Shown here in pieces: positions 1-59,373 of a DNA stretch of 64,000 nt. The position numbers and the translations under genes are program-made. The stretch's first letter is position 1. Each line of letters begins with the position of its first letter. The notes beneath the pieces were generated by a model that did not search any database, was not told the origin of the DNA, and was given only the letters and a program-made list of their open reading frames with translations. Source of the DNA: Mytilus trossulus (Eukaryota); the NCBI RefSeq assembly GCF_036588685.1, contig NC_086376.1:67621630-67685629 (forward strand), given 5' to 3'.

Positions 1-1905
1 ACAGTGTTTAAATATATCAATATTAAATTATAAGTTTGTATTTCTTCAAGGACTAGTTATTATTCACACTTTCATTTACATAATAGCATCTAGTACAATG
101 TATTTTTGAACTCTTTTTGAATGTTATCAAAAGACATAAAATATTTACATATATATAAAGATACATATGGGTTAACCATCAATTAGACGGCAACCAGAAG
201 ATTTAACCAGTTTACCAAAGTAAACATTTTCAGTTACCATTGATAGCCGTTTATTGAAAAGAACTGACTTAATAAGAATCATCTCATTGCATGTCTGCAG
301 CAATACAACTTTAAATGGTCTATTTTTTAAGACTGAATGTGAGCTTTGACTTGTTTTTCACTAGTTATTTTGGAGCCCTTTATAGCTTGTTGTTAGGTGT
401 GAGGCAAGGATCTGTGTTGAAGACGGTTCTTTGATCTATAATGGTTTATTTTTACGAAATTGTGACTTAGAAGGACAGTTGTCTCATTGGCACTCATACC
501 ACATCTTCTTATCTCTGATTAAGGAAGAAATACTATGAAGATGTAATAACTACTAGTATTTGTTTTACAACAGAATTTCCAAGACTAAAAACAGATGTAA
601 TTTAATTGAGACAGCAACAGATCCCCCATTAATTGAAAGAAGTTGTACATAGATTTCAGAGAGTCAAAGATCTTTTATCAAAACTGGTCTTTTACTATAA
701 ATATAGAGGCTAAAAATATGGCGATAAACAATAAACAATCATAAGACAAACAGTATACAAACACATCATAGAAATCAAACCCTACCCAAAAACTGCTACA
801 AACAAAGCTAACCTCTTATAAGGTTCATACCAATAAGCATCACAGTTTCTAGGCAAAACATTTGTCCTGAACAAGCATGAAATATTTGACACTGTTTGTT
901 AAATAAACACAACAATCAATCAATATATGTGACACACAATGACATACCAAAGTAAATGACACAATTACCCTTTGAAAAAATCCTTCAAAATATGTACTTT
1001 GTCCTAAATTAACCCATAAAATCTTTATAAAGAGACAACATGCAGTTTACAAATGAGTTTTGGAAGGACCATACATATGAAACTTGACACAAGGGAATTA
1101 AACATTTAAACAGCTTATCTCCCTTGAAAAAATTCTCTTGTGTCTGAAGTCCATTTTTAATAACATTACCCATGCAAAGAAAAACATGAAAATTGTAACA
1201 AATATCTAAAAGAGTTAGAAATGCTTTCAGTGCCCATCAAATAACACTGATGAATATTTGATTATAAAGCCAATGAAGCATGGTGTCATAAAATGTAAGA
1301 ATGATATACATGCATGCATGTTAACTACAGATAATCAATAAGCTTTTTACACATTAATCAAATCATCATATTATACTTAATCAAAATGTCAAGCCTTTTA
1401 TTAATTAAGTATATTTTATAATTCCAAATCGGTTTATTAGACTTAGAATCAGTGCAAAATTCCAGATCCATTGGAGGCTACAGAATATAAATATATTCTT
1501 GAATATTAGTTGCAGAACTTCCCTGTTTCTAGTGCTATAAAATTATCCAAACCAAATAAAAATATGCAATTATTTAACTTTTATTTTCCTGGTATTCAAC
1601 TTTGTGGTCCAATTAAAAAGTAGAATTTTGCAAGAACAAATAATCATGGTTATAAATAAAGTATTATAATTAAGTGGCAACTGTTTTTATTTTAGACCAT
1701 TGTAATAACCACAAAACTAAGACTTTGGAATACTCTATGAAACCACAAACTTCTTCATTAAATGTTGGGTTTTTTTTTTTTAAAAGAAAGATTATTTCAA
1801 ACAGGTATCGTTCTTTTCAAATTACATGTAAAAGAATTCCAAATTTTTAATTATACTGTTAGTTTAAAATTTTGTCCATGCAGCACACGCATGCATATAT
1901 ATTAC

Positions 1906-4338
1906 CCTCACAGGAGATACAACTACTGGAAACACAGCTGAACATGTCAACATTAATGGTGTAGCTTTGAAAGATTGTTTGACTACTGATAGGCCCATTG
2001 TTGTACCAGAATTTATACGAGTTGGTTGTGAAGGTGTTGAGGGAATAGATTCTGTACTCCCGAGTGTTATTGGTGATCCCAATGAAGACATACCTAAACT
2101 TAGGTCCAAAGATGTTGAAGAAGTACTGGTGCTCTCAGCGGTATTATATGACAAAGCTACAGCAGATAAAGATGGAGCAGAAACTGATTTCGACAATCCA
2201 GTTTTTTGCTGAATGCCTTGTACAGACATTGTTTGAGAAGTTGCATTCTCAGTTTCATGTATAGTAGCCATGGTTGTTTTACTCTGGATTTGTAATGGTG
2301 GTTCTTTGAAGATAGTCAGCTTGTCTGGCTTTTTGGCCTGGTTATCTGCAATTAGTGGTTCCTTAACTAATAAATGTTTGCTTTGGTCCTCCAATTTTCT
2401 TACAGATTTTGTCCTGAGTTCTGGCAAGGTTTTTTCATTCATATTCATATCTGCTGTCCTTAAATTTGGCAGTGATTCTGAAGTCTTTAAAAGCTTCAAT
2501 GGTGTTGCCTTTTGAGACTGCTTGCTGTCTGCTGAGCTCTGTAAATTATTTATTTTGACAGGATGTAGTTCACAACTAGCTAGGTTTTCTTCTTGATTAC
2601 CGGTAGTGTCATTTCTCTGACCTTTATTTTTGTGAGTGCCTAAGGACTGATGCATGGTACCAAACTCTTTGCTTTTCTTTGTTTCATCAGCTGCAGACTT
2701 GTGGATTTTAACAATGTCATTAGATTTAGGATTTTCAACTGCTTCGACTGATTTTGGGATGATCATGGTAACCTGGTCAATTCCATAACTTTTCTGATAG
2801 AAATTTCTTGTTATAGAAATGTCATATTTGTCTGTTGACAGAGAAGTTGTTTCTTTCACAAGGACAACATCTTTTTCAGATTTTTCAACTTTTTGGTTTA
2901 AGTGTACGTCCTTATCGAAAGATTTCGGCTCACTATCATTCAAAAGATTGGCCATTTCATTGGAAACTTCTTCTTTCGCATCTAACGACGTTTTGAGAAT
3001 GTTTTCTAATTTGGTATCTCCATTTGTCCCATTAAAATTAAACTCGGGTTTCACAGTTGACCTATTTACTTCCATGTTCCTTGCAGTTGACCTGTCTAAT
3101 TTCATTTTTTCAAATTCTTCTTCATTACAAGTAACTCTTACAATTTTATTATCAATTACTTTCCAAAATGGCATAAATTTTTCTTGTTTTTCTCTATCAT
3201 AAGTTTTTTCAATAAGATTTTTCGAATCGCTTATCAGAGAACTGATATTTTGTTCTTGTGCCGTCTTAAATTCAGTTGTCCTTGACAAATCAGAATCAGA
3301 ATAATATCTGAAAACATTTTTGCCTTGCAGAACATCATTCTCAGACAATTTGTTCTCACTATTTTCAGAATATTCTGAAAGTGGTCTGGAAAGAGTACCT
3401 GTGGCCTCTGGACGATCTCCATCTTTTAGTTGTAAAGTTTTATCACTTGTTACAGAATATTCAGAGATAGGTCTTGAAGCGTTATTTATCAAATCTGTTT
3501 CTGTCAAAGTTTTAGTGCTTTGGGTAGATTCAGAACATTCAGAATATTCAGAGTTAGGTCTCGTTACTTTTCTTGGCATTTTTTCAACATTTTGAATACT
3601 ATTCAGAGAATTATTTACAGAGTTTTGATCAACTGAAGTTTCAGACCCATTTCTTGAGTTCTTTTCCAAAAAAGGTCTAGATGCACTGACAGAAGTTTGA
3701 TGAAAAGAGGGTTCAGATACAAATTTCCTGTCATCGTTACTTTCAACAGGAGACAAAGTAAACATTGGAGAGGTACTCAAGGGGTCCATTAAGCTCAAAG
3801 TGTGTCTCTTCATGGATGTTTTAGGGCTGTAATCATTTAATTGCTCCACTGAAGTATAAGACCTGTATAGTGTATAAGGTGTTTGAGGTTTAGTAGCCAT
3901 GCCAGTTTTATTTGGTAAGAAGTTTTGTCTCTGTGGTGTGGTCTGGATCACTGTGTTTGACACAGAACTAGCTTTAGATGACACTGTGGTGTTGACTGCC
4001 CAATTTGTTGCTTTCACTGTCATAAATCTTGGCTTTCCAAGAGGATTCCTTCCTTTGTTGTCACTGTCATCAACTAGACCAATTTTACTCATATCACCTG
4101 CCGAAGACGATACATGTGTTCTTTGAAAAGCTGGAGTGAAATGGCTGCTGGAAGATTTTTGTGTTATCAAATTACCAGCAACATTCTTGTTATCAGTACT
4201 AGGACCATCTAAGATGTTCTCAGCAGGAATTACGGTGCCAGTACCAGCCAAATTTGATCTGAATCCAGGCAATGACATTAAATGGTACAGTGGGTTATAT
4301 AGTCCAGGCCTACGACTAGACACAGAGGTACCAGGATC
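1906..4338 (-). CDS. Giant Ser/Thr/Lys-rich, low-complexity in-frame exon, probably an alternative exon of the LRRC49 gene. If the 1906 donor is unused it is a terminal exon reading to the TAA at 1864.
   Basis: 819-codon ORF in AT-rich DNA. Acceptor ttttgtctgtag|GAT at 4338 is phase 0 and in frame with the ORF. Candidate donor AGG|gtaata at 1906 is also phase 0 (2433 nt = 811 codons). Confidence 0.75.
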
Positions 4339-4828
4339 CTACAGACAAAACATGTCAATATGTTCTAAATAAAAATGCAAGGGAAAAAACATGCAAATAT
4401 TTTATAAATAAAAGTGCAAGGTATAAACATGCCAATATTTTCTAAACAAAAGTGAAAGGTATATACATGCAAATATTTTCTGAAAAAAATAGCCCAAGGA
4501 CAAAACATGTAATACGGTTTTATTGAACCAGTACCAATCTGAATAAAACATATAAATGTGTGTTTCATCTGACACACCACATATAGCAAGACAAAACATC
4601 TTTTAAAATGACAAGAACTCAATAATGCTATATTATCTGTTGTCACTATTTAATGCAATGCTAAGGGGAAATTGCACAATTACTTTCCTTCAGGAAATAT
4701 AATTTGTATTGCTGTACAAATTTTTCTTTTAGTATCATACAACTATAACCATTAATTTAATTCATTAGTTGATCTGATCTAAATTCTGAAAATCACTAAA
4801 TTCCAGTCAGTATACTTTAATTTATATA

Positions 4829-5864
4829 TGTTCCGGACCATATGAGGATTTGGACCATACGCGTATGGTCATGACCATATGGGTATATACTCATATGGTC
4901 CGACCATACGCGTATGGTCGGACCGTACGTGTATGGTCGGGGTAATTTACAGGTTTACTTCTAGTTGTCACGTCATTAAAAAGACACTACCAAAGGTAAT
5001 TTTATTATAGATCTATAAAAAATTTAATAATAACAAGATTAACAAAATGAAATAAGCAGTTTCACACAGTAAATTTTTTCACTAGTCATAACTACAGTAA
5101 AAAACTTTTTTTTTCATTTTTCGATGTGTTATTACGAGTGAATGGCAAAATGTCGACATGGGAAGATAACCTCCAAATATATCTTATTATTGAACTGTTA
5201 CACATTCAATCAATTGTTTTACTATAAACTGACGTAAACGTCGACAGGATAAAGAGTCTAATAATGTGCTTACTTTTGAAACTTTATATAATTAGCATTT
5301 ATTTAGCAGTGCAATATTCAGAATGTTTATACTAATACGTGTTTTTGTTGTTAACAAATGAATGACGTAATCGGCAAGGACCCTAGTTTAATTTTCTAAG
5401 TTGTCTGGTGATATGATGCACTTCAGTCTTGTTACGATATTGGAAATCTAGAGCTTTTTAAAAACATCGTAGACACATCGGAATGACCCAGGACCCCAAA
5501 AAATCTATGGTACCGTACCGTATGGAAGTAAACGTCATCCTAAACATACAAGCAAGAATACCATTAGCGATGAAAAGTAGCTTTGGCATAATTATTTAAT
5601 GCTATTTGAATAGTAAATAATACAATTGCATGTAGAAACATTGTTTTTTATAAAGTTTTCTAATGCATATTATTGAAAATCTAATACCGATTTGGTCCAA
5701 ATACTCATATGGTCCGGCCCGTTAATAACCAAACGAGTATCATACTCATATGGTCCGACCATACGCGTACGGTCGGACCATACGGGTATGGTCGGACCAT
5801 ATGAGTATACGCATATGGTCATGACCATACGCGTATGGTCCAAATACTCATATGGTCCGGAACA
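4829..5864. mobile_element. Non-autonomous TIR element (MITE) with ~100-bp palindrome-rich TIRs, copy 1
   Basis: Ends TGTTCCGGACCATATGAG...CTCATATGGTCCGGAACA in a TATA context, with repeated GACCATACGCGTATGGTC palindromes. Confidence 0.88.
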
Positions 5865-5969
5865 TATACACAAATATTGACCCATAAAATTATAAATTAT
5901 CCACACTCTTTGGTGTTAATATTGAACTATATTGACCATAGCCCCTACAAATATTCACTGATTACTTAC

Positions 5970-6117
5970 TGTAACTCGTTTCATGTCCAACTGTTTAAGC
6001 TGTTGCATATGTCTGAGTACAATCTGTTTATAGTACTGTTCCTGAGCGATAGGGTTCCCATCGAGAGATATTTCTGACAGACTAGTAGATTCTCCAAGGC
6101 AAGCAATGTCTTCAAAA
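5970..6117 (-). CDS. LRRC49: LRRC49 last LRR/LRR-cap exon (SFEDIACLGESTSLSEISLDGNPIAQEQYYKQIVLRHMQQLKQLDMKRVT)
   Basis: 148 nt, splice sites tttcag and gtaagt, phase 2 to 0. Has the DGNPIAQE..YK..QLDMKR LRR-cap motif. Confidence 0.94.
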
Positions 6118-11963: not shown

Positions 11964-12154
11964 CTATTTCTCTTCCAAGTAAGCCGCGGAGTCACATCCT
12001 GGTCCAGAGATTGATTGTCTACCTTTTTGGCATTTTTGATTGAAAATGAAATTCCCTTAACACCTAACTTGTCCATTTTCCTATGTCTTTCACACAGACA
12101 GTGAAGTAACTGCTGTTTAAATCTCTCAAAATCCATCATCTCTCTACGAGACAT
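11964..12154 (-). CDS. Candidate internal alternative first coding exon (MSRREMMDFERFKQQLLHCLCERHRK...LTWKRN)
   Basis: ATG-initiated, 63 codons plus AG|gtaacg phase-2 donor. Compatible with the phase-2 acceptor at 6117. Confidence 0.5.
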
Positions 12155-16061: not shown

Positions 16062-16123
16062 CTCGAAATTTCATTAAAACTAAGAAACAGCCTCTGTAAG
16101 CTTGGTAAATTGTCCACATCAAC
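16062..16123 (-). CDS. LRRC49: LRRC49 LRR exon (VDVDNLPSLQRLFLSFNEIS)
   Basis: 62 nt, splice sites ttttgcag and gtaagt, phase 0 to 2. Matches recalled DVDNLPCLQHLFLSFNNIS. Confidence 0.92.
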
Positions 16124-20630: not shown

Positions 20631-23084
20631 TGCTATAATATATAATAATAGAGCATATAAAATCTACTCTGTTTCCAAAACTGAGCAATCTATTGTAAAA
20701 TCTGTTTTACATCATACCATTCTCCACTATATTTTAACATTCTGACATTTTGTTAACACATGTTGCTGCAATAATAACTCAATGTTTGTGAAATTTTTGT
20801 GAAATTGTTCATGATTTTGATTTTATGATAATTTGGAAAATATAGCTGCATCATTTAAGTGTGCACTAAGTTCAAGTTTGCTTGGTTGCTAGGTGAACTA
20901 GATATTCACTAAGTAAAGAAACAAAATGGTCAAATAGGTTTACCGCCCATAGTTTTGTTACATGGCTCCATTATTTGATTGGCAAAAATTAAAAAAAATA
21001 CACTCTTTTAAAATGAAGAGTACAATTGAATTATTGACTAGTAAACAAGAAACTTAAACTTATTCATCTATGTACACACTTAAAATGATACAAGTATTTT
21101 TTTCTCTCAGACCAAGAATAAATGGAATGTATATTAATAAACTGCTGCACCATAAACACTCCATTCCCCAACAATTCTTAGAAAAAGTTTTGACTTTATT
21201 TTTCAGTCTTATGCTTCTTTCCAATAACTAAACATGTGTATTAAACTGATTCAATCTGGAATTCCTTAATACTAAGGTTAATACAAAGATTAAACTTCCT
21301 TAACTGTTGAAAGACAATGGGAAAATTGTCAAAAGTGTCTAGATCCTCAAACCATCAGTTCACTTTGGGAAATTTATTAAACTTTGAAATAGTGTAGTAT
21401 GTTAGATCTTGCTTACTTTTTTAAAATCAAATTCCCATACTCTGAAAACTGAAAAGGCTATGGTGAATATTGTTTAAAAGTCAACAGAAGGAAAAAAATT
21501 TGATGATGTTTAAAGTAAACCACTTATGGCAAACTTGAGTTAGAGTGCTTCATGTGAAAAATTGCTTACCCGGTATTTTTCACGCTTCACAGTCCTATAA
21601 CTCTAGGTTACAAAAAATGAAAATTGTCAAAAATTAACAAACAGACCATGTTTTGAAATATTTTGGTCAATGTAATTTCAGACTGAGAGGTAGACCTTAT
21701 CCCTAATCCCGGCTGACCCGGCCGCTTGAACTTTTGACGTTTACAACAATCACTAATCCATTGTGGCGTCAGATATTTTGTTTTATGACGTCAAAATTTT
21801 TTCGGGAACCTGTGTGATTTCAAGCAATGGCGGACAAATAGCGATAAAGTGTATGCTGTTCCACATGTACAATTAAATTGCTTTAGTCCTTATACATATT
21901 AACTGTTTCTCTAATAAAACTACACAACATTTCATATACTATATGTATAAACTGATATAATAAACATTTAATTTACTCAAAACCACAGTAAGATATAGTG
22001 ACACTGTTAAACAAATGTATTTCTAACATTTTCCTTTGTTACAGCCAAATGACTTGATTGTGTAGGTAGAGGTAATATCTTTGGTAAGCTTGCTTTCTAC
22101 TTGAACTGTAAAGTTATTATTAGGTTAGGTATACTACCCTCTTTTAAGAGAAGACTAGTCCTATAGATAACCAATATATATGTGTATAAACTACTCTGAA
22201 GGTACTATGTAGTATATCTAATCTTATAATGATTTCACAATTCAGCTAACAAGCAATTGATGATAGTATCTTTACCTTCAGACTCAAGTCTGTAAACCTA
22301 AACAATTCTTTCACTCAAACTCCCAATAACATTTTGTACATCAAAAAAATGATTTCCATAAGAATATATCCATTCAAAGAAAGATAACTCCTGCTGATTA
22401 ATAGTTCTTAAAATTCCATATAAGCTTAAATAACTGGACTAAGAGAGCAGACAGATTTTTAGCAGACACAACAATTAATGCACTATATAGAGTTTTAGTT
22501 CAATAATATTTACCTTTCTACTCTGTTAAAAAAGTCATTTATGAATCAACTAATTATTGTACAAAAGTGTTACTCTCTAATAGCCTATGGTCAAGTTGAT
22601 GTAATTGAATGATGACAGTGAATTACTTCCACTTGACCCTGAGATAAATTTGTCATGATGTAGAATGGAATATGAGAATGTTGTAAACTCTTGCAAGTAA
22701 ATAGAATATAAAGGCGATAATTTGAAACACCATATAAATGTATAAAGTCCATAAAATAGTGTATATACTGTTTTTGCATAACTTCTAAAAAACTGAAGTA
22801 AACAACTTTAGTTGTCTGATTTTGATAAAAGGCCATTAAAATTAAACTCAAAGCATAATTTCAACTTGCAATAGGATTTTGTAATTAACAAAAAAATGTT
22901 GGTTATTTTTTTAAGTTTAAAGCACAATCTAAATTGAAAATAAACAAAATTAATTAAAATAGAGATACATTGTAAATTTCCTACCCTTGAAGATCAGAAG
23001 ATTATAAATAACTACATAATTTGAAGTAATGTTGTATATAAACCAAATTTAAGATCCTACATTACATTCTAAGATTATACATAC

Positions 23085-23228
23085 CACAGTTTTGATTTTG
23101 TTCCGTCGAAGGTTTAGTTCAGCTAATGAATCCATACCCGATAAGTTATCTACATGCACTATATGATTTCCTGCTAAATTAAGCACTCGTAACTCGGACA
23201 GATGATTTAAATTTTCTATATTGGATAT
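23085..23228 (-). CDS. LRRC49: LRRC49 LRR exon (ISNIENLNHLSELRVLNLAGNHIVHVDNLSGMDSLAELNLRRNKIKTV)
   Basis: 144 nt, splice sites tttcag and gtatgt, phase 0-0. Encodes two LRRs. Confidence 0.95.
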
Positions 23229-23541
23229 CTGAAATAATATAAAAAACATATTTTGGGATAAATTCCTTTATACAGTAAATTGGGCAAATGAAATTCAAAC
23301 AGAAAGGATTATACATATCAATATGATCATACTCTAAAACCATAGCAATTTCTGAAAAGCCAAGAGCCTCTCATTCATAAAGTAATAGGTTCTTGTTGCT
23401 TAAAGTCATATGAAACCTCAATTTAAAAATTTTTTTTGAGTGACTATCCTCTTTTGAATGACTGTCTCATTTCTTAATAAATCTACTAGTCTGGTAGACA
23501 TATTAAGTGGTGACCTATCAGGTGTACTTGAAAATAATTAC

Positions 23542-23608
23542 CTGATTTCCATGTAAATCTAAAACATCTAACTTGAACAAAGTATCTAAGTTTTCTATCC
23601 TCCTTATC
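23542..23608 (-). CDS. LRRC49: LRRC49 LRR exon (IRRIENLDTLFKLDVLDLHGNQ)
   Basis: 67 nt, splice sites ttttcag and gtaatt, phase 2 to 0. Contains the LDVLDLHGNQ motif. Confidence 0.93.
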
Positions 23609-24283
23609 CTGAAAAAAAACCCCAAACATGTTAACTAGATTAAAGAAGACACTCACAATACAAACAAAAAATGTTGTGTCTTTTTATATTGTTTTCTCAT
23701 TTGATATATGTATCAATAAAACTTTTTTCAAAAACAAAAGCATAGCTACTAGGTATATAAAATATAATAACTTTTATAAAAGGAAAACTTTAAATGTAGT
23801 ACTGCACATGGCGTTCATTATCACTGAACTAGTATATATTTGTTTAGGAGCCAGCTGGAGGACGCCTCCGGGTGCGAGAATTTCTCATTACATTGAAGAC
23901 CTGTTGGTGGTGACCTTCTTCTGTTGTTTTTTCTATGGTAGGGTTGTTGTCTCTTTGATACATTCCCCATTTCCTTTCTCATTTTTATCTGTCAATTTGT
24001 TCATAAAAAACATTTACCAGTAGGAATTTCCAGTCTATGAAATGGTAAAAGGACACCCTTTAAAAACATATACTGTAGTGGTCATTGTTCAAATGATTAG
24101 ATTTTTTCGTTAGAAAAAAGTGTATCAAAAGACAATTTCAATGGTAGCTGCACAAATCTGGACAAAGTTTTATTGGTCAATAATCAATCAAATTCATTTT
24201 TACTTAGTTTAATTTTGTCAATAAATTGATCAACTTTTTTCAAAAGTAAGATTTAGTCCTACTATATATCCTATCATACTAAC

Positions 24284-24487
24284 CTGTTTTTACCTAACAT
24301 AAGAACCCGTAATGATTTCAGTGCATTCAATCCTGCTATTTCTTCTATTTGATTGTCATACAAATCTAAGAATATCAAACGTTTTAATGAACTCAGATGC
24401 TGGATTTTGCATATCATATTGTGTTGATAATTGAGCAGACGCAGCTGTTCTTCTCCCTCCAAAATTGGACATACTGTTAGTTTCCGT
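24284..24487 (-). CDS. LRRC49: LRRC49 LRR exon (RKLTVCPILEGEEQLRLLNYQHN...LDLYDNQIEEIAGLNALKSLRVLMLGKNR)
   Basis: SDS22-type LRRs that closely match recalled vertebrate LRRC49 (KLTVCPII..LRLLNFQHN..LDLYDNQIEEI..LRVLLLGKNR). Splice sites ttttcag and gttagt, phase 2-2. Confidence 0.95.
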
Positions 24488-24767
24488 CTGAAAATATTTA
24501 AATTAGATAATGTAAATATTTTGAAGGCAAAGTTTACATTTAATAATTCATTATTCAATAATCAATAATATAAACACATAGTATATTAAAGTAACATATA
24601 CTTTCTAAACATAGTAGTAAATATAGGAGTAATTGTCATGCTGTGTTATTTCTCCCGTATTTATTATCCATAAAAATTAATGACTGCCAATTTTTTAAAA
24701 ATACACAAAAACCTCAAAATATCATACCAAATGCCACTAATCTGAAACAAAAACCATAATTCAAGAA

Positions 24768-25258: not shown

Positions 25259-26643
25259 TGTCAGTCCACTATTGGGTCTTCAATGCAGCTAGAAACTAAT
25301 TTTATGTATCATTGTCATTTTGTTTAGTTTCATTTGTTACCTATTCTGACATCAGACTTGGACTTCTTTTAAACTGAGTTTTACTGTGTGTTTGGTTTTT
25401 TTCTACATTGGCTAGAGGTATAGGAAGAGGGTTATGAACTCAAAAACATCTTTAACCCAGCTGTATTTTTGCGCCTGTCCCAAGTCAGGAGTCTCTGGCC
25501 TTTGTTAGTCTTGTATGAGTTTAGTATAACATTGTCACTGAACTGGTATATATTTGTTAAGGGGCCAGCTGAAGGACGCCTCGAGGTGTGGGAATTTCTC
25601 ATTGCATTGAAGACCTGTTGATGACCTTTCGCTGTTGTCTGCTCCATGGTCGGGTTGTTGTCTCTTTGACACATTCCCCATTCCCATTCTCTATTTTATT
25701 ATGTCAATATATATAAACAATTCACCAAAGTTTCATGGAAACGACTCAAAGTTTTTTTGGAGGGCATTGTCTGAAAAATGGACAATCCCCCCTTTTTAGG
25801 GAACATAAAAAAATAAAAATTCAAAAACAAAAAATCTAAAATTATATAAAAATTGAAAGGGAGCTCTCATCAATATTTATAAAGAATTCACCAAAGTTTC
25901 ATTCAAATTTGTTTAATAGATATATGACATGTGGTAAAAGTGCCAATGAGACAACTCTCCATCCAAGTCACAATTTGTAAAAGTTAACCATTTAAGCCTT
26001 TTTGTGTTATTGTCCGACATGTTGACAACAGACAGACTAACTGAAGGACGGACAAGGGTATACCATAATATGCCCCATAAGATGGTGTATAAAAGAATAA
26101 AGGCAATGGTCATTAAAGTGTTACTGAACTATATTGTACTGTCTAAGGGATTGTTAGCCAATGGATATCAAGCAACAAACCACTCAATCAATCTAATGTG
26201 GCTGTATTTATATGTATCATTGATGCATAATAAATCATAAGGAATCAATATTGGCATTGATTCCCGGTAGATTTGAAAGGCAAATATCATAAAAAAAATT
26301 GTAGTCTTTTTTTATACTATTCATGCCTGATTACTATGACTCAACTATCTAAGGAGTGGCATATTGTTTTTGAAGTGAATATATGTGATAAGTAAATCAG
26401 TGTAAGATATACAATGACACACAGTTCCCTATATATACTGGTTAAACTTCAGATAGATTAGATCATCCCTTAGATTTTTCTCTAGGGCTGCACTCGAAAA
26501 AATTAAGGAGGTGTACAGCAGCTTTATTATTTAATGCATATTGTGCTATATTCTTTACCTAAGCACTTAATAATTATGTTTACTCCAGTTTCCTTATATT
26601 ATGTAATGTAAAAGTTCATAATATGTCGATTTAAATGAAATAC

Positions 26644-26749
26644 CTGTCTAGATTAAGTCTGTCTGGATTTGAAGATCTCTCTTCAGGTGTTCTATAAACT
26701 ACAGGTATTCCTGGAGCTGAAGGACTCTCTGCAAATATTACTCTATCAC
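26644..26749 (-). CDS. LRRC49: LRRC49 exon (GDRVIFAESPSAPGIPVVYRTPEERSSNPDRLNLDR)
   Basis: Acceptor taacag, donor AG|gtattt, phase 1 to 2. Resembles the vertebrate LRRC49 segment just before the LRRs (..EEKILYSDRLSLER, recalled). Confidence 0.88.
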
Positions 26750-27398
26750 CTGTTAATTTAAAAATTTAAAAATATATAAAAAGGCATAAAAACATGTCAA
26801 TCTTAATAAATTACTGCAGCAATCCTTAAAGTGTAGTTTTTATGACTGCTTTCAGGTTTTGTGTTATTTTTAATCAAAACAACCCTTTAACCTGAGGTGT
26901 CCAGTTTTGGGATTTTATCCTCCTAAAGATTTACCAGGTGTTGGTTCACTGTTGTTTGTAAAATATAAGGAATGTTTCCCCACTTTCTGATGCTGAGAAA
27001 AACAATTGTAAATTAACAAATATAAAAAAAAGAAATTTTGTGCATATTCTTGAAAATGAACAAACCTTGCTCCTATTACTATATCAAAGGTTACCTTAAA
27101 AAAAAAGTATAAAATTCCTGACAATGGTTTGTCAATGACTGACAGCATTTTCTGATCAACTTTTTAGTGAATCAATACCAGTATTTGAGACCTAAGCATT
27201 ATAGCCAAAAAGTTCTCTGGACCTATTTCTCATTATTTGAATTCAAACTATGCATGAGTTAACATTGACATCATAAAATCAAGTTTTTCAACACATTTTT
27301 TTCTAAAATTCTCCAAGTTTTCCTTACAGAAAACAGTGCCCTTGTTAATAGGCAAGTGCAAATTTCAAACAAATTAAGCATGTCATTGACCCTCCTCC

Positions 27399-27673: not shown

Positions 27674-29595
27674 TTTCTAGTGTTCATTTTGTAATTAGTT
27701 CAGTGCTTAAGCACTGACCAATTGCTCTAAGGCTAAGGAACTTCTTTTTAGACATCTGATTACTTATATAGGATAAAGATAGCCAATCAACCTTTTAAAA
27801 TTATTTGCAGCCCAGATGACTTGTTACAGACATAGAATTCATTGAATCATCCACTGTTATGGCATGCTATGCTTTTTGTCATTAGATTGTATTCTCAGGA
27901 TCTTACTATATTAAATACTAGTGCACTGACATTGCCCTTGATCAATAGTTATAATATATTGGGTGTTATTCTAACTTTAAAAATGAAATCAATTGTTCAG
28001 AAAATAAAACAAATGAAAAGCAAACAAATAGAAAAGTCTATATGAAGTAAACAGCTCCATACGTGTCTTTACTGTCTTAATGTGAAAGTATTCTAAATAG
28101 ATAAAATCAAATAGTATTCCACAATTTAAATGAACAAGATTAATCTTATCCCTTGACAAAATTCATACAAAGGCAATATCTAAATCATATATCAAAAGAT
28201 ATGAAGTTGAAAAGAGAAATTTGTCAATTGGGTATGAAAAACTGAAATACTTTAAAAAATCTACCATATTATTTGCATTCAATCTGAGGTGTTTCAATTC
28301 TTCCTTACATAATGTGCATAAAATGTAAATTTATTTTCATCCTTTTTGTAAGTCTTTGTAAACATTGTAAATTTAGAAATTTAAATCTATTAAAAAGAAG
28401 GTCTCAAGTATTCCAGAAGGCATGTTTTCATTTTAACAATGATGAGCCAATCTTTTTTCACAAGAAGAGGGCGGATATTCATTTGAATTAACAGCACAAA
28501 AGATGCATGGTGTAAAACAGTAATTCTCATTATTTGGGGTGTATGATGACTAACCAAAACAAAATAGCGTCCTCTAATTTTGACCATATCATTAAGGTCT
28601 CAAAGGTTTAGAATAATCAATCTCAAAAATATTGAAAGATCAAAAAGATCTAGAATTTACAGTTTGTTTATCTAAAAATAATGTTGCCCAGAGAATAAGA
28701 GAGAGAAAAACTATGCAAAAGTCACATAAAAATTTCAATATACTGAAGAAGGCAGATACAAATCCCCAAACTATGGAATGACAAATCTAAACATCATTTA
28801 ATTAAATTGGACCATAAATTAAGTAAAAATTTAATTAAACAATCTGATCACATTTCTGAAGTTTCAAATAAATCAAAATGGACTTATCAGGAAACATGCT
28901 TTAAAGTTTTAAAATTTTAGTGATTTAAGTCCAATAACTCTTGGAAAATAAATTTTAAGAATCTGTTAAATCTAAAAGAGCTAGCTAGTCTTTATACATA
29001 GATTTGACACAAAGAATATTTTGTGAAGATCAGCCCAAACTTCAGTTACCACAAATAAAAGGTAAAATAAAAAGACAGACAACAGTTTACCATAATACAT
29101 CAGTTGTGCATAGGTTTGAAAGAATCACCCCTGCTTGAAGTAAAGTATGTAAAGTGCACCCTTTCACATTGTACTGACCAGCTGGTGAATTTGGCAATGT
29201 GCAATGAAAACAATCAACAAACTGATTTAACCAGTAATAAACTATTCAGTGCAAATTAACTAAAAATATTTATGAAAAGAAATGCAAAGCTTTGTAATAA
29301 ATTAACTATCCGCAAAAAATTACTCAAGAATATACATTTGTTTTTTTATTATATTTTGGAAATATATATTTTTACCCAAATCAGAAAAGTTTATATTTTG
29401 AGCTAATTTTAAATAAGTGATATTTTTGAGTGGTAAATGTTTTTATTGCTATTTTTTTTAAATTTTGCTTTGATCTTAATTTTTGATTTCAAAACCAAAG
29501 ATAATCTGTAAGTAACTGTCACTGGTTAAAAATTTAGATAAAATTACCTTTAAAATAAGATTTAAACCTGGTTATCTATGCATCAACTAACAAAC

Positions 29596-29772
29596 CTGGT
29601 AAAAAGGCAGGTGCTTTTTGTGTATTGGGTGACAAATGTGAACTAGAGCGTGATGTTCTCCCACTGTCCTCCACATCCTGAACTATATCTGGGGGTGCAT
29701 TTAGATCATGTGCTAAGGCTGCTGCTGGAACTATTTGTTTCTTGTTACTTCTGTAGTGAATAGGAACTTTTT
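29596..29772 (-). CDS. LRRC49: LRRC49-like exon (EKVPIHYRSNKKQIVPAAALAHDLNAPPDIVQDVEDSGRTSRSSSHLSPNTQKAPAFLP)
   Basis: Acceptor tttcag, donor CAG|gtttgt, 177 nt open, phase 1-1. Joins the next exon as ...FLPG-DRV. Confidence 0.8.
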
Positions 29773-30912
29773 CTGAAATAAAGCAACCATCACCATCAAA
29801 ATCACACTAGTGCATAAAATGTTACCAGAACCATGAAATCTAAATTTAAAACACTCCCTTAGCATAAAAATATAAGAGAAGTTAAATATTTTTCATTCAA
29901 ACCAAAATTCTTTACCAGATTATTCAGTACTTTAGAGAAGGAAGATATTTGTGTAATGGTTAACAAATGATAAACAAATGCTATGTGATGAGAATAGATG
30001 ACTTGATCCTTTGGTCAGGTCAGATAAGAATGCAATAATATGCAAAATATAATTCTAAGGAACTACATTTTAACAAAATACCATAATCTTTCTATGAAAC
30101 ACAAGTAATTGACACCATGCCATTCCATACTTCTGTGGATTAATTTTTTAAGGGTACCAATAGTTCATGGATTTCCTAGATTTAAAATTCTATAGAAAAT
30201 TCTCTTTTTGTTGAACCCCTTAAAAATGAAGTTTAACTATAACATGAATATTGGTACCCAGCAAAATAAAAAAGGAATCCATGTTATTTTAAAAATAGAT
30301 TTCAGTGTTATTATTATTACTGCATAGTGCAATAAGTGATAGGTTTCAATTCATACTAAAGTGAAGTGGTCAGTTTAAATGTTAATAATCCTTCAAAGAG
30401 ACTTTAGATTATATATTCTAATTGTTCAACCTTTTCTGAACTTTTATAGACAAAATAATGCGCCATAATCCTAAAGGATAAGCAAACATTATTTAATCTG
30501 CATATAAAATAACTTTTGTTTACAGCACTACAAACACATAAAAACAGAAGAATTTGTTATAAATATTTTTTTTTGTTCCTTGAACAGTCTTCAAATTTTT
30601 TCATATCTATTTTTCCAATGTGGACTGATATATTTTTATTATGCATAATTCAGTGCATGATTTCAAAATAAACAGACTTTTGGGAGGGTTTCCTATGCTG
30701 TCCCATAGAAAATTACTGCAAACCCTTTACAAGTTATGAAAATGTAGAACAACTATGGAAGTATTACATTGTGGCAAAATTATTTGCTGTCATTTAAGCC
30801 TTATGCATGTTGTATTATATAGAAACTTCCCTAGTCAGAAAATATCTAACTAAAGTTTCATTTATAATGAAAGTTTCACTTATAGATGCACCTGAGTCAA
30901 AGTAAACATTAC

Positions 30913-33086: not shown

Positions 33087-36000
33087 AGTAGGTCATATTT
33101 GAATGTGAATCAGTAGGTATTGGGAAGTAGGTCATATTTGAATGTGAATCAGTAGGTATTGGGAAGTTGGTCATATTTGAATGTGAATCAGTGGGTATTG
33201 AGAAGTAGGTCATGTTTGAATGTGAATCAGTGGGTATTGAGAAGTTGGTCATGTTTGAATGTGAATCAGTGGGTATATTGAGAAGTTGGTCATGTTTGAA
33301 CGTGAATCAGTGGGTATTGAGAAGTTGGTCATGTTTGAATGTGAATCAGTTGGTATTGAGAAGCAGGTCATATTTGAATGTGAATCAGTAGGTATTGAGA
33401 AGTAGGTCATATTTAAATGTGAATCAGTGGGTATTGAGAAGTTGGTCATGTTTGAATGTGAATCAGTGGGTATTGAGAAGTTGGTCATATTTGAATGTGA
33501 ATCAGTGGGTATTGAGAAGTAGGTCATATTTGAATGTGAATCAGTGGGTATTGGGAAGTTGGTCATGTTTGAATGTGAATCAGCAGGTATTGAGAAGTAG
33601 GTCATATTTGAATGTGAATCAGCGGGTATAGAGAAGTAGGTCATATTTGAATGTGAATCGGTGGGTATTGAGAAGTTGGTCATATTCTAACGTGAGTCAG
33701 TCGGTATTAAGAAGCAAGTCATATTCGAATGTGAATCAGTGGGTATTGAGAAGTAGGTCATATTTGAATGTGAATCAGTGGGTATTGGGAAGTTGGTCAT
33801 GTTTGAATGTGAATCATTGGGTATTGAGAAGTTGGTCATGTTTGAATGTGAATCAGTGGGTATTGAGAAGTTGGTCATGTTTGAAATTGAATCAGTGGGT
33901 CTTGAGAAGTTGGTCATGTTTGAATGTGAATCAGTTGGTATTAAGAAGTAGGTCATATTTGAATGTTAATCAGTGGGTATTGAGAAGTAGGTCATATTTG
34001 AATGTAAATCAGTGGGTATTGAGAAGTAGGTCATATTTGAATGTGAATCAGTCAGTGGGTATTGAGCAGTAGGTCATATTTGAATGTGAATCAGTGGTTA
34101 TTGAGTAGGTCATATTTGAATGTGAATCAGCAGGTATTAAGAAGTAGGTCATATTTGAATGTGAATCAGTGGGTATTGAGAAGTAGGTCATATTTGAATG
34201 TTTATCAGTGGGTATTGAGAAGTAGGTCATATTTGAATGTGAATCAGTGGGTATTGAGAAGTAGGTCATATTTGAATGTGAATCAGCAGGTATTGAGAAG
34301 TAGGTCATATTTGAATGTGAATCAGTGGGTATAGAAAAATAGGTCATATTTGAATGTGAATCGGTGGGTATTGAGAAGTTGGTCATATTCTAACGTGAGT
34401 CAGTCGGTATTAAGAAGCAAGTCATATTCGAATGTGAATCAGTGGGTATTGAGACGTAGGTCATATTTGAATGTGAATCAGTGGGTATTGGGAAGTTGGT
34501 CATGTTTGAATGTGAATCATTGGGTATTGAGAAGTTGGTCATGTTTGAACGTGAATCAGTGGGTATTGAGAAGTTGGTCATGTTTGAACGTGAATCAGTG
34601 GGTATTAAGAAGTAGGTCATATTTGAATGTGAATCAGTGGGTATTGAGAAGTTGGTCATGTTTGAATGTGAATCAGTGGGTATTAAGAAGTAGGTCATAT
34701 TTGAATGTTAATCAGTGGGTATTGAGAAGTAGGTCATATTTGAATGTTAATCAGTGGGTATTGAGAAGTAGGTCATATTTGAATGTGAATCAGTGGGTAT
34801 TGAGAAGTAGGTCATGTTTGAATGTGAATCAGTGGGTATTGAGAAGTTGGTCATGTTTGAATGTGAATCAGTTGGTATTAAGAAGTAGGTCATATTTGAA
34901 TGTTAATCAGTGGGTATTGAGAAGTAGGTCATATTTGAATGTTAATCAGTGGGTATTGAGAAGTAGGTCATATTTGAATGTGAATCAGTGGGTATTGAGA
35001 AGTAGGTCATGTTTGAATGTGAATCAGTGGGTATTGAGAAGTTGGTCATGTTTGAATGTGAATCAGTTGGTATAAATAAGTAGGTCATATTTGAATGTTA
35101 ATCAGTGGGTATTGAGAAGTAGGTCATATTTGAATGTTAATCAGTGGGTATTGAGAAGTAGGTCATATTTGAATGTGAATCAGTGGGTATTGAGAAGTAG
35201 GTCATATTTGAATGTGAATCAGTGGGTATTGAGAAGTAGGTCATATTTTAATGAGAATCAGTGGGTATTGGGAAGTTGGTCATGTTTGAATGTGAATCAG
35301 TGGGTATTGAGAAGTTGGTCATGTATAAACGTGAATCAGTGGGTATTGAGAAGTTGGTCATGTTTGAATGTGAATCAGTTGGTATTAAGAAGTAGGTCAT
35401 ATTTGAATGTTAATCAGTGGGTATTGAGAAGTAGGTCATATTTGAATGTTAATCAGTGGGTATTGAGAAGTAGGTCATATTTGAATGTGAATCAGTGGGT
35501 ATTGAGAAGTTGGTCATGTTTGAATGTGAATCAGTGGGTATTGAGAAGTAGGTCATGTTTGAATGTGAATCAGTGGGTATTGAAAAGTTGGTCATGTTTG
35601 AACGTGAATCAGTGGGTATTGAGAAGTTGGTCATGTTTGAATGTGAATCAGTTGGTATTAAGAAGTAGGTCATATTTGAATGTTAATCAGTGGGTATTGA
35701 GAAGTAGGTCATATTTGAATGTTAATCAGTGGGTATTGAGAAGTAGGTCATATTTGAATGTGAATCAGTGGGTATTGAGAAGTTGGTCATGTTTGAATGT
35801 GAATCAGTGGGTATTGAGAAGTAGGTCATATTTGAATGTTAATCAGTGGGTATTGAGAAGTAGGTCATATTTGAATGTGAATCAGTGGGTATTGAGAAGT
35901 TGGTCATGTTTGAATGTGAATCAGTGGGTATTGAGAAGTAGGTCATGTTTGAATGTGAATCAGTGGGTATTGAAAAGTTGGTCATGTTTGAACGTGAATC

Positions 36001-36457
36001 AGTGGGTATTGAGAAGTTGGTCATGTTTGAATGTGAATCAGTTGGTATTAAGAAGTAGGTCATATTTGAATGTTAATCAGTGGGTATTGAGAAGTAGGTC
36101 ATATTTGAATGTGAATCAGTTGATATTAAGAAGTAGGTCATATTTGAATGTTAATCAGTGGGTATTGAGAAGTAGGTCATATTTGAATGTTAATCAGTGG
36201 GTATTGAGAAGTAGGTCATATTTGAATGTGAATCAGTTGGTATTGAGAAGTAGGTCATATTTGAATGTGAATCAGTGGGTATTGTGAAGTTAGTCATATT
36301 CAGATGTGAATCAGTTGGTATTGAGAAGTAGGTCATATTTGAATGTGAATCAGTGGGTATTGAGAAGTTAGTCATATTCAAATGTGAATCAGTGGGTATT
36401 GAGAAGTAGGTCATATTTTAATGTGAATCAGTGGGTATTGAGAAGTAGGTCATATTT
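33087..36457. repeat. 39-bp tandem satellite, about 86 units (GAGAAGTAGGTCATATTTGAATGTGAATCAGTGGGTATT)
   Basis: Directly visible periodicity. It produces the 13-aa periodic ORFs on both strands. Confidence 0.98.
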
Positions 36458-42490: not shown

Positions 42491-43517
42491 AACTACAACA
42501 AAAGAAATCAAATCTTACCAGTGGATTTTTGATCTGAACCTGTAGTTTAAATAAATATCATTATAGCCCTCCTCAATGATATTAGTTTCATTTTCAGTTT
42601 AAAACCTGGATATTAGGGACATGAGAAATTACATCCATAAAAAGTTATTCACAGTTATTTTAAACATTTGAGTCTTGTTTGATTCAAGTCCAGGACTCTT
42701 TTTTGAAAAATTTCCTCATTTGAAAACCTTGCTCTGAATTTCCACAAAAATTTTGTCTTTTTGTATTTTCTAATGGTTCTTATTTTGTAGTCCTGGGCTA
42801 TATATCTAGTAATGTGTCGTTTTAGAGATAAGAATGCACAATTCAATTTTACCTTAAAACCTATCTTCATTAGCAGGTGTACACTGAGCTTTAAGAGGTC
42901 ACTAAACAAAATATTAAAATCAAAAACAATCAAAAACAATGAACCCTCAACTGATGTCAAGGTCAAACTATATAATAACAGATCCCTAAATATCTGTTCA
43001 TTTCATACCCAATATTTTCAAACTTTTGTAGATGACAAACACATTCCTCAAAACAAAACAACATTATAGGGATATTTGTCTTATATACAAATGTAAAGTC
43101 AGTAATGACAGCATTAACCCAATGATGAACTGAACATTTTCACACTGAAATACTATAGAGGTCAAGGTCATAAAATATCCCAGACAGACATGAAGCCCCA
43201 TAAAAATACAACCCCTTAACCAAATATTGTTTACTCAGTGATCTTATAATTTATATAAAATCCTGGTGAATATGTATTCTATATATTACAATAATTTGCC
43301 TCTGCATAATATGATATGGTTTATACTGACTGAGGAATGCTAATGACTTATACCTAAATGAGAAGTGCAGTAAAATGAAATGTGTCTTCCACCACAAATA
43401 AACATAAAATTCTAGAAAATGTTTCATTAATAAACTGTTCTACTACATATGGAACAATCAATACTAGTAACTACTTGTTTCTTCTTTTTATCAATTCTGC
43501 TGATCATTTCTTTTTAC

Positions 43518-43653
43518 CTGCAAATTGATTCAACGCAAAATCCGGTGTACCTTGGTGAGTGTAGCGCTTCATGTTTACATCACTGGGTAGAATCTGAGTT
43601 GGACGAAATATCACTTGGTCTTGAGGCTGAACAGTGCTCTTATCAAACTGTTG
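43518..43653 (-). CDS. LRRC49: LRRC49-like N-terminal exon (QQFDKSTVQPQDQVIFRPTQILPSDVNMKRYTHQGTPDFALNQFA)
   Basis: Acceptor tttttag, donor CAG|gtaaaa, 136 nt open, phase 0 to 1. GC content is higher than the flanks. Confidence 0.7.
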
Positions 43654-46743: not shown

Positions 46744-47939
46744 ATATTTACTTTTAAATAAAACAGAAATATCAGCAAATAGCAATAGGATTCATACTTG
46801 GATTAAGCATAACTGTCATTGGATCACACTTGATAATCAGGATAGGTCTTTTTAGTTACTACTAGCTTTTTTTGAAGCAGTACTAGTAACTATTGTTTAA
46901 CATGTGTGTTGGATTCCTAAATGATATATATCAAATTAAACTGGTGTTGGTGAAAGTTCCAGCATTTATCAGGATAAAATTTTGAAAATTTCATCTTTAT
47001 CTGATAGAAGTTGGGCATAAACTTTTAACACCTCCATCTGAATCATCTGTAATTTATTGTTCAGGAGAAAAATATTAGTCAAGTGTTGTTGTTTACTACA
47101 ATCTCAAAATCCAAAGGGCCATAACTCAAAACAACAAGCTTTTTATAATTAGTCAACCTAATTCTGTATTCAAACGTGTCATTTTTTAGAATAAAACTAA
47201 ATATTATTTTAAGTTGATAAATTCAAATAAAACAGGAAGATTATACATTTCTAAATCATAGATAGATTAAATTAACAATTTACACCTCCTCCATCTTATG
47301 GAGAGGCTTAACATTTTTCTTAAAAGTTATATTTGGTAACAATTGAGATGTAAATATCAAAAACTGCAGTTTGGAAAGAAGCTTTGTTTTAACTTTGGGT
47401 ATTTTCATGGTATAACAGCTAAAGGAATATTGTAATGTTAAAGAAATATTGAAATTTTGTATTGTCATTATACTTTTCTTAGATTATCTGCATATTTATT
47501 AATATTTAACATATGGTATCAATTTGGTTTGAACCCAAATTTGTAGGTGAGTTTTAAAAACAATAATGATCAATAGTGACATTTCTGTGTTATTCATGTA
47601 AATAATATTACTTGGGTGATTATCTCAATGCAGATATAACCCTCAGTCACAATAATAAATCTCATATTTTTCTTAAATCTTCAAAAATCACAATAATAAA
47701 TGCATGCAAATATTTGAATTTACAGTTCTACTTTTTAAACTTATTACATGTACTATCCAGTGTTGACATCAAACTTACATGTACCTGTCTCTATATAGAG
47801 ATCAAAGATAAACAAGATCTGCTGCATACACATACAAACTAGTACATCATCATCATCATCATCATATACAATGTACATACAGTGTTTAAGACAGTTAAGT
47901 CCTTCAAAAAAATCTTTTTTATTACAATATATAACTTAC

Positions 47940-48035
47940 TGTGTGTCTTGAGAAAAGGGAACTTTGTAAGTTACCACTACTAACTGTAGGAACTATTTGT
48001 AAGGAGGCTAAAGAGTTAGTTGTATGTATGTTAGT
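47940..48035 (-). CDS. LRRC49: LRRC49-like N-terminal exon (TNIHTTNSLASLQIVPTVSSGNLQSSLFSRHT)
   Basis: Acceptor ttttattgcag, donor ACA|gtaagt, 96 nt open, phase 0-0. Confidence 0.65.
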
Positions 48036-49606
48036 CTGCAATAAAATAAAACTTTTTGTTAATCATTAAAACACTTCAAACAGCAACAAAACTAACAAAA
48101 AAGTGTGCGAGTATTTTTTAAAAGAATATACATGTATGCATTGTAGTCTCAATCAAACCTTAACATGTATATCCTCTGTCTTAACCATGTTCATGATGTT
48201 AATGGCTTTTTTGTTTTCATGTTTTAGAAATGTGATACAATGTTATTTGTCTTGAGCCAATGACCAACATGATTGATAAAAACACAAGTTGACAGCAGAT
48301 GTGAGCAGGTCTTTACATTTGAGTAAATTTTAAACTGTTCACAATCTACATGTACATAAAGTATGATAAGATGAATGCATTAAGCTTAAAACAACACTTT
48401 TTCTTATACCAAAACATCTTTTCTTAGAAATGTTTTATTCTTTCTTTAAACAAGAGTCCAGCTTGCCATTGAAGGACCACTATTTGCATAATATAGGCTT
48501 TAAGAATTGTTAAGTTTAATGAAAAATTACCAATACTCATGAAAAATCTTATAATGTTCTACATTTGTTCTTGTATCTTATACCTCATATAACTAATAAT
48601 TGTAATTTGCTTCATGTGTCTTATTTATATACATACTGTATTCATTGCTTTAATTTGGCAAAGAAGATATATGCTTTAAACATTGTTAAATAAACTAGAC
48701 TTAACATTTGAAAGCCTGATTATAAACATTTTAAGAAAAGAAAAAAATCTTCATTGGCACTATCAGAAAATCAAATCAAAATCTTATAGCTATAGATTAA
48801 GGAACATTTACTTATCATTGATACAAAAAATGTACTACATGTATGCATAGGTTTCCCCTGACATCATGGACATAAAATGAGTAGGAGGTTGTTTCTTTTG
48901 GCTGCCATGACAGAGCAAATGGGTTGTTTTCCTTAATTGAAATATGTTGCAGAATTAACTTTCATCATAACAAATGGACAAAAATGGCTGTATTTACTCT
49001 TCTTCTTCTTCTAAGTAAGGAACCAAATTCAAAGTGAATGTGTATGCAATGGTCCTGCAAAAACTTTGCGGAGTGCTGGAATTTATTACTCCTCAAAAAC
49101 TACTCAGGAGTACTGACAATAACCAGTATGACCAATTAGGTTGGAACAATATTCTAAGCCAATAATTTCAGGACTGGCATTCACTAGCTATATAAAATTT
49201 TAATGCATTTAGCCTTCAGAAATATAAAATATTTTGGGTATTTTGATGGGCATTTAACAAGTGCATATGTCATGATATTCCTAGATAGCACTATAAGCAC
49301 AATGTTTGATAATAAGTCTGCTCATATGCTGTTGTTAATGAGATGAAAGGACTTAATGGTTAATTGAAAATACCAGAATTGAGGGTACATTCAATCCATT
49401 CAGGATTCAATCGCAACAAAACTATAGCACCTTTCAAAGAATTTCTATAATGATGCCACAATTGGAGAGCTAAGAAAATCACCAAACTTTTAAAGGGTGG
49501 TGTTATTTCAAATTAAAGTCCACAGTTGACACTTGTTGTAAAATGTGTGTTATTACATATTTTATTGCTTGTGAAGTTGTGTGAAATTATGTTTCGACTG
49601 TCGTAC

Positions 49607-58382: not shown

Positions 58383-59373
58383 TTAATTTGGTAAGTTACT
58401 TTCCTCATTGGTATTTTGCCTGTTTTTGTTCCTTGTTTTCACTTGACCAAAATTGATTGCACATGCAGTGAATTTTTCTTTCAATTGATTTCGAAACTGT
58501 TTAGACATCGCAATATAAACCCATATATTTATCATGTATGAAATGTTCAGATTGATGTTACAAAACCATACACCCATTGATGTCTTGATCCATGCTGGCT
58601 GTTTGGGAAGGAAACTGTAGTAATACATCAACGCTGTCATGGGAAGCTCACCCAGTACAAATATAAACATAACCAGAACCAGCATAATGGTTGTTCCGGC
58701 TTTGATTTGTCGGTTAGACGGCTGACTTGCCAACATTTGTCTTCTATGGATAGTCAACAAGCAGATAATCATGCATATAGTTATTAAAACTGCTGGTGTA
58801 AGATGCAAAGTAAAAAAATCGTATAGTTGAGTACATCTTCCACATATCTTTGAACCAAATTATGTTATCAAAGCTACAATACAAAGCTGATACGTTGTTG
58901 GTCGATAGCTTAATAATACCCTGAACGTCTCGGAATAAAATCAAAGGTATACAGAAAGTCATCATTGCTGCAAAGGAAACAACAACAAATAATGTTGTCG
59001 TCTTAATCCCACATAACCGTGGGCCTTTGAATGGGAACGCACAAACAACAGCTCTCTGAATAGCAAGGAAAGTTGTCGAAAGGATGGATAAGGAATGAAA
59101 GAGTATGGCTATTATAAGTGTTAGTGTGTCTATGTAGCATCCAGCAGTGGGCCAATTTCCGACGATGTTTGATGAAATACTTTTTACAAGCCCTGACATC
59201 ATAGCAAGTGTGTCATATATAGCTATAATGGAAAGGAGGACGGATATTGGTGTTCTGATGTTTCGAGTTAGCCAAATAGTAACAACAAATGTGTTGGTAA
59301 TGAGAATAATCCCGAACAGTCCTGCTTTGACAACAATACTTTCTAGATTTTGAACATCTAATTTGAAATACAT
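58383..59373 (-). CDS. Class A (rhodopsin-like) GPCR, peptide receptor type (sex-peptide/FMRFamide-receptor-like), interrupted by one frameshift at the homopolymer 58812-58818
   Basis: Two overlapping ORFs give TM1-4 (N in TM1, IAIYD in TM2, LAIQRAVVCAFPF at the end of TM3) and TM5-7 (HLTP, GELP, SYMINIWVYIAMSKQFR). Removing one T restores RFFTLHLTP. Splice acceptor tttctttcag lies 23 nt upstream of the ATG. Confidence 0.85.

Follow-up and report, generated by a model that had tools for sequence, protein, structure and literature searches.

The 64,000-nucleotide stretch of Mytilus trossulus DNA analyzed here (the window) carries part of LRRC49 (CSTPP2) on its minus strand, and the open segment at 1906-4338 belongs to that gene. 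We consider it probable that this segment is a mytilid-specific alternative coding exon whose inclusion is regulated and which encodes a disordered stretch of about 810 residues between the leucine-rich repeat (LRR) domain and the coiled coil of the protein. The default mRNAs would join position 5970 directly to an exon that begins EEERR, giving proteins of 750-900 amino acids, and some transcripts, to judge from congener gene models, would carry the 2433-nt exon with the frame kept and position 1906 joined to the coiled-coil and C-terminal exons. The features on which this reading depends are as follows.

1906-4338, minus strand: giant alternative coding exon of 2433 nt (811 codons), in phase 0 at either end
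5970-6117, minus strand: constitutive LRRC49 exon with the LRR cap (..FEDIACLG..QLDMKRVT), placed from the sequence and by tblastn with M. edulis, M. californianus and M. trossulus LRRC49
4276-4278, minus strand: ATG of Met21 (..YHL-M-SLPGF), start codon of the LRR-less RefSeq M. californianus isoforms X1-X7, kept in three lineages
1864-1866, minus strand: TAA met when the donor is unused; the read-through tail VIYMHACAAWTKF is unconserved as protein

Exon limits and reading frame

On the minus strand, 824 codons without a stop stretch from a TAG at 4341-4339 to the TAA at 1866-1864. This TAG belongs to the splice acceptor (ctgtag/G, with AG at 4340-4339), and the donor, AGG/gtaata at 1906/1905, is weak in that it lacks G at +5. 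Upstream, the exon at 6117-5970 closes in phase 0 with a perfect gtaagt donor (ACA/gtaagt); downstream, beyond the window and across an intron of 2972 nt, an 84-nt exon (contig positions 67620479-67620562) starts in phase 0 behind a good acceptor and encodes EEERRIALVMARKDDEKKKDINKTQVLK (EEERRIALV..). Because the giant exon is in phase 0/0 with both neighbors, inclusion and skipping each preserve the frame.

The frame is the longest in the window, twofold over the next. At the local base composition, with a stop probability of 0.07 per codon, a stop-free run of such length has a chance probability of about 1e-26, and after 500 rounds of shuffling the longest open runs had a mean of 79 and a maximum of 149 codons; chance is excluded. 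G+C content is 28% at third codon positions versus 40-42% at positions 1 and 2, which is compatible with coding sequence. The preliminary description of this DNA had reported an 811-codon stop-free block with a phase-0 acceptor and donor placed after ..QLDMKRVT; the sequence, the shuffles and the congener models bear this out, and the block is a real observation.

Inclusion and skipping in public gene models

Public models of three other Mytilus species (CAG2218232, CAC5411420-22 and XP_052101091-97) have the same exon limits as the window, but their N-termini disagree. The M. edulis proteins CAG2218232-40 (ENA; 1468-1655 amino acids, 91% identical) run in a single frame from the LRR domain through the exon to the C-terminus, and the 1655-residue CAG2218232 includes the junction ..SPVR/EEERR. 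For M. coruscus (ENA), CAC5411420-22 read ..QLDMKRVT/DAATSVSG.. and end inside the exon, and CAC5411418 reads ..SPVR/EEERR. The M. californianus proteins XP_052101091-97 ('uncharacterized protein LOC127735043 isoforms X1-X7', 1241-1291 amino acids) are 79% identical to the exon translation; they begin at its Met21 (MSLPGF..), without an LRR domain, and pass through ..SPVR/EEERRIALV.. into the LRRC49 C-terminus. As X7 (XP_052101097) runs on to 'LRRC49-like isoform X8' (XP_052101098), we infer that all of these come from one RefSeq gene. Since ..SPVR/EEERR occurs in RefSeq M. californianus models and in ENA models, the donor is backed by two annotation pipelines; the acceptor is joined, in junctions of the ..QLDMKRVT/DPGTS type, in the M. 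edulis and M. coruscus models of the ENA pipeline only. The proposal of a coding exon of LRRC49 with usable phase-0 splice sites thus held up, both sites being used in congener models. What is expected of an in-frame cassette, two used splice sites and a frame kept either way, is seen here in gene models rather than in reads.

Every recovered RefSeq isoform with an LRR domain, across four species, skips the exon and reads ..QLDMKRVT/EEERR. These are M. californianus X8-X13, M. edulis X1 (900 amino acids) to X31, M. galloprovincialis X2 (893 amino acids) and shorter forms, and M. trossulus X1 (850 amino acids) to X11. The existence of these skipping isoforms makes the exon alternative, and by the gene models skipping is the default form. 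A literature search returned no paper combining LRRC49 and Mytilus.

The M. californianus models could also be read to mean that the exon is solely the first coding exon of an LRR-less protein, with transcripts that start at an internal promoter or in non-coding 5' exons entering at or upstream of 4338 and being translated from Met21 into the LRRC49 coiled coil and C-terminal domain, and that the form with both LRR domain and insert is an annotation artefact. All seven exon-bearing RefSeq isoforms of that species start MSLPGF, Met21 is conserved in three lineages, and the TAG directly before the exon means that an unspliced entry would start at Met21; moreover, among proteins of 599-1906 amino acids we found none that spans the LRR-to-exon junction independently of the ENA models. 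A pure first exon, however, would have no need of the 3' splice-site region and of the 20 codons before Met21, both of which are conserved in frame in a lineage whose exon is only 39% identical; those codons are about 50% identical there, with NPLYHL unchanged. In addition, the exon is phase-0 compatible with the exon upstream, Met21 lies in a weak start context (T at -3), and Gnomon takes the first ATG as the model start where 5' evidence is missing. We therefore regard a role solely as first exon as a serious but unlikely alternative to the regulated in-frame exon.

Lineage distribution and conservation

A HMMER profile search against 1.84 billion cluster representatives matched six, every one of them the giant exon: a second lineage, a third lineage, the M. 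coruscus tail model and three fragments. The open reading frames (ORFs) of the second lineage are 39% identical by BLAST (50% over aligned columns) and the third-lineage ORF, of 834 amino acids, is 27% identical; these ORFs derive from contigs of Logan, ENA and JGI and were called on unspliced DNA, and from their sources the two lineages are presumably other mytilid genera. The frame is thus open in three lineages, at 91, 79 and 73% identity within Mytilus and then at 39% and 27%, and its expected conservation in congeners was found across the Mytilus models. GT follows the same Arg codon in all three lineages.

Outside these lineages no insert was found at the LDMKRVT-EEERR junction in 13 aligned LRRC49 proteins (from bat, shark, amphioxus, abalone, Dreissena, scallops and oysters). 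In this alignment LDMKRVT runs straight into EEERR, in agreement with the preliminary description, by which vertebrate LRRC49 is not known to have an insert here. Compared with the non-mytilid LRRC49 retrieved, which lack a junction insert, the mussel exon either adds 811 residues or replaces the LRR half. The remaining retrieved LRRC49 proteins are 609-900 amino acids long, the exception being a Batillaria fusion with an additional match to a reverse-transcriptase domain (PF00078). Congener DNA was sought in two metagenome scans, with the alignment and with a second-lineage ORF as queries, and neither gave a confirmed locus. Judged from the profile search and the LRRC49 proteins retrieved, the exon is specific to the mussel family (mytilid-like lineages).

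The exon protein matches this genome at a single locus, so the exon is single-copy; a transposon origin was considered and ruled out on the same ground. Since the exon is 91% identical to M. edulis and the other exons 94-100%, it evolves faster than they do, yet under constraint. Its length changes occur in frame and include a 9-residue repeat expansion in M. coruscus. The nonapeptide PKSTDTVEI is present in about six tandem copies at residues ~880-930 of the M. coruscus model and in about 1.5 copies in the window, as an in-frame minisatellite in the disordered region.

If the segment were instead an independent nested gene or a decaying relic within an LRRC49 intron, the joined models would be wrong. 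Its lack of Pfam or other homology and its omission from RefSeq in three species would fit such an origin. Against it, the exact AG/GT limits are conserved in distant lineages, the phase 0/0 ends fit the neighboring exons, seven RefSeq isoforms continue into the downstream LRRC49 exons, and a frame of about 800 codons that stays open at 27-39% identity is no relic. We consider this explanation very improbable and retain that of an exon of LRRC49.

Intron flanks and candidate splicing control

In the other lineages the contigs on which the ORFs were called are unspliced, so that the ORFs read into the introns and allow the exon flanks to be compared as translations. The comparison picked out the following elements.

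1872-1901, minus strand: conserved intronic block at +5 to +34 after the donor (UAUAUA-UGCAUG-CGUGUGC-UGCAUG-GACAA), a candidate Rbfox-type enhancer
4339-4377, minus strand: conserved 3' splice-site region, pyrimidine tract and AG, translating as HFYLEHIDMFCL and a stop versus HFYLAQIDIFCLQ in the 39% lineage
4348-4489, minus strand: 38-nt tandem repeat, 3.7 copies (Tandem Repeats Finder), abutting the acceptor

The window sequence after the donor is GTAATATATATGCATGCGTGTGCTGCATGGACAA. It contains two UGCAUG motifs, at 1895-1890 and 1882-1877 (intron +11 and +24), with GUGUG in between; 50-nt windows with two TGCATG make up 0.27% of those in the 64 kb. Read in frame +1, the block gives YICMRVLHGQ, which is identical to the tail ..R/VYICMRVLHGQ of the 39% lineage, and the third-lineage tail VIYVHAW fits the same block given a 9-nt deletion. 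As a 1-nt indel in the TA run shifts the frame and the nucleotides are nevertheless conserved, the constraint would be on the RNA and not on a peptide. On the other side of the exon, the 38-nt repeat has GCAUG at 4471, 4432 and 4395, two of the three being UGCAUG. Four further TGCATG lie 590-860 nt past the donor, at 1044-1318 (minus strand), two of them inside a TGCATGCATG run. Of the 32 minus-strand TGCATG in the window, eight fall in the two introns next to the giant exon (1044-1895 and 4395-4471).

The downstream flank also bears on the possibility that the segment is an alternative last exon, with the donor unused, translation stopping at the TAA at 1866-1864 and the LRRC49 C-terminus absent, as the preliminary description had offered as an alternative. 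That stop lies 13 codons past 1906, and 807-residue Logan ORFs end in a read-through tail, although such tails are also compatible with genomic DNA. The tails are unlike in length and sequence, however (13 residues in the window, 29 or more elsewhere), the 1-nt indel puts them in different frames, congener models splice ..SPVR/EEERR, and the GT after the Arg codon is shared by the three lineages. These differences disfavor a terminal exon, and we consider it improbable next to an internal exon with a functional donor.

The binding motif of Rbfox proteins is (U)GCAUG; a downstream site usually enhances inclusion, an upstream site usually represses it, and GU-rich motifs accompany bound sites (PMC11874969). 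The exon shares with Rbfox-regulated cassette exons two UGCAUG and a GUGUG within 30 nt of a weak donor, conserved across lineages; it differs in having GCAUG also upstream, in the usually repressive position, and in being about 20 times longer than is typical of such exons, and its dependence on Rbfox is at this stage a prediction from motifs. Proximal (U)GCAUG motifs are thus present and appear conserved, as read from translated tails. Together, the two conserved UGCAUG elements, the weak donor and the conserved flanks suggest regulated, tissue-restricted inclusion. The UGCAUG elements would point to Rbfox-type regulation, which promotes inclusion in nerve and muscle, rather than to the cilia- or sperm-specific isoform that the preliminary description considered possible; nerve or muscle is a first guess for the tissue. 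The conservation of the intron flanks is new here.

The encoded segment

The exon translation matched no Pfam family and no PDB profile, and its best ESM Atlas score, 0.79, was under the useful range. Ser and Thr make up 24% of it, Lys 8.5% and Asn 7%, and with 100 basic and 94 acidic residues it is near-neutral. AlphaFold2, run with an 8-sequence alignment, gave a mean predicted local distance difference test score (pLDDT) of 32, with 777 of the 811 residues below 50; only residues 388-427 reached 58-68, a stretch made up of PFWKVIDNKIVRV and a helix and predicted as a beta-hairpin with the helix after it. The segment is accordingly predicted to be intrinsically disordered, and the earlier suggestion of a disordered linker agrees with this low score and the lack of a Pfam, PDB-profile or Atlas match. 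About 12 conserved islands are common to the three lineages.

Islands 1-4: NPLYHLMSxP; GKPRFMTVKxTNWAVNTTV; NKTGMATKP; DPLSxSPMFTLSPV
Islands 5-8: LQGxNVF; PFWKVIDNKIV; KYDISITRNFxxxSxGxDQVTMIIP; LKTSESLPNLW
Islands 9-12: KLTIFKExP; MxTIxETE; SKSxSAPSLS; KNSGTTMGxSVVKQSxKxTPLMLTCSAV

The motif RPxSEY occurs three times in the exon of the window.

A single exon of several kilobases that encodes a predicted disordered chain is what we find here (2433 nt; mean pLDDT 32). Giant alternative exons for disordered projection domains are known, such as the giant ankyrin-G/B exon and those of MAP2/MAP1-type proteins; with these the present case has in common a single multi-kilobase in-frame alternative exon, a disordered low-complexity chain and a cytoskeleton-associated protein. 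There is no sequence relationship, and the mussel exon is limited to the mussel family.

The host gene

The exons were searched one by one. Besides the giant exon and that at 5970-6117, the LRRC49 exons in the window are as follows.

47931-48038, minus strand: LRRC49 exon
43516-43653, minus strand: LRRC49 exon
29594-29776, minus strand: LRRC49 exon
26643-26756, minus strand: LRRC49 exon
24280-24501, minus strand: LRRC49 exon
23539-23610, minus strand: LRRC49 exon
23076-23231, minus strand: LRRC49 exon
16064-16123, minus strand: LRRC49 exon

The exons of the window are 94-100% identical to annotated LRRC49-like proteins. The gene extends about 34 kb past the window start, and its downstream exons, for the EEERR coiled coil and the conserved C-terminal domain, were located in the same genome; the C-terminal exons are 100% identical to M. 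trossulus XP_063434335. The N-terminal LRR domain is of the LRR_9/LRR_4 type, from Pfam matches on the M. coruscus model. The mussel host gene has the same LRR domain, LDMKRVT-EEERR junction and C-terminal domain as LRRC49/CSTPP2 of other animals and is their orthologue. Human LRRC49/CSTPP2 forms a pair with CSTPP1, a peripheral module that is found at centriolar satellites and has a fine-tuning role in the TTLL1 polyglutamylase complex (PMC13376646). By analogy with the human protein, for which they are known, membership in the TTLL1 complex and pairing with CSTPP1 may hold for the mussel protein as well.

Other features of the window

Within the intron that separates the LRR-cap exon from the giant exon lies an element of about 1.05 kb (4825-5868) whose terminal inverted repeats, at 4825-4940 and 5755-5868, are each about 115 nt long and 95-97% complementary. 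It resembles a recent insertion of a miniature inverted-repeat transposable element or DNA transposon, and its repeat arms could pair in the pre-mRNA and loop out about 800 nt. Further upstream, 11964-12154 (minus strand) is a candidate alternative first exon with an ATG at 12154; it ends in phase 2 at AAT AG/gtaacg and would join the exon at 6117 in frame (AG+T, Ser), providing an LRR-less N-terminus upstream of the giant exon. Protein models starting at this exon were looked for and none was found.

At 34335-36284, inside an LRRC49 intron and on the opposite (plus) strand, adjacent open frames of 246 and 403 codons are separated by one stop and match the Rad21/Rec8 conserved C-terminal region (PF04824; E = 9e-6 and 4e-12); the pair may represent an intronless retrocopy or a pseudogene of the Rad21/Rec8 kind. 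A 220-codon frame at 58747-59406 (minus strand), upstream of LRRC49, has a sub-threshold match to 7tm_1, the rhodopsin-family G protein-coupled receptors (28 bits versus a cut-off of 30.5).

Assessment and implications

Several observations weigh against a regulated exon inserted in frame behind the LRR domain. No exon-bearing protein occurs among the recovered RefSeq models of M. trossulus, M. edulis and M. galloprovincialis, and inclusion in M. trossulus itself is deduced from congener gene models and not from RNA reads. The LRR-to-exon junction comes from ENA pipeline models, RefSeq M. californianus starting at Met21. As to control, conservation of UGCAUG in the other lineages is read from translated read-through tails and not from DNA, and a Pfam search of the genome for Fox-1_C gave zero matches in the controls as well, so that it carries no weight either way on an Rbfox gene here.

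With these points taken into account, we still lean toward the existence of an in-frame, LRR-containing form of about 1650 amino acids, as in the M. edulis ENA models. It and a Met21-started LRR-less form of about 1250-1290 amino acids may both be present. In the gene models the LRR-less isoform is documented equally with the protein-doubling one, and doubling is plausible. Of the earlier picture of a cassette that doubles the protein, the alternative exon stands by its skipping isoforms and the disorder by prediction; the doubling form is seen only in the M. edulis ENA models.

The included segment would not be a folded domain; placed between the LRR domain and the coiled coil, it might form a long, flexible projecting or docking arm by which the LRRC49-CSTPP1 module is retargeted or tethered. 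Inclusion would be regulated: about 34 nt at the start of the downstream intron and about 40 nt at the end of the upstream intron are conserved across lineages, and the downstream block holds the candidate Rbfox-type enhancer. A fuller scheme, which we put forward as quite speculative, is that a coding exon of roughly 800 residues originated in the mussel family at an otherwise invariant junction, is switched on by an Rbfox-type intronic mechanism in particular cells (such as neurons, muscle or ciliated gill), makes the LRRC49-CSTPP1 module there a long tether that redirects tubulin polyglutamylation, and doubles as an LRR-less start.

Since the exon is already in public models of some Mytilus species, it is a moderate lineage novelty and not a surprise; it seems to be lacking in the RefSeq annotation of the M. 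trossulus assembly and in those of two sister species. Cilia, flagella and neuronal transport are under the control of tubulin polyglutamylation, and little is understood of the accessory subunits of the TTLL1 complex. If our reading is correct, a regulated 811-residue arm on LRRC49 would be a natural experiment in the retargeting of that complex, and the exon would clearly exemplify the birth of a very large coding exon within one animal family.

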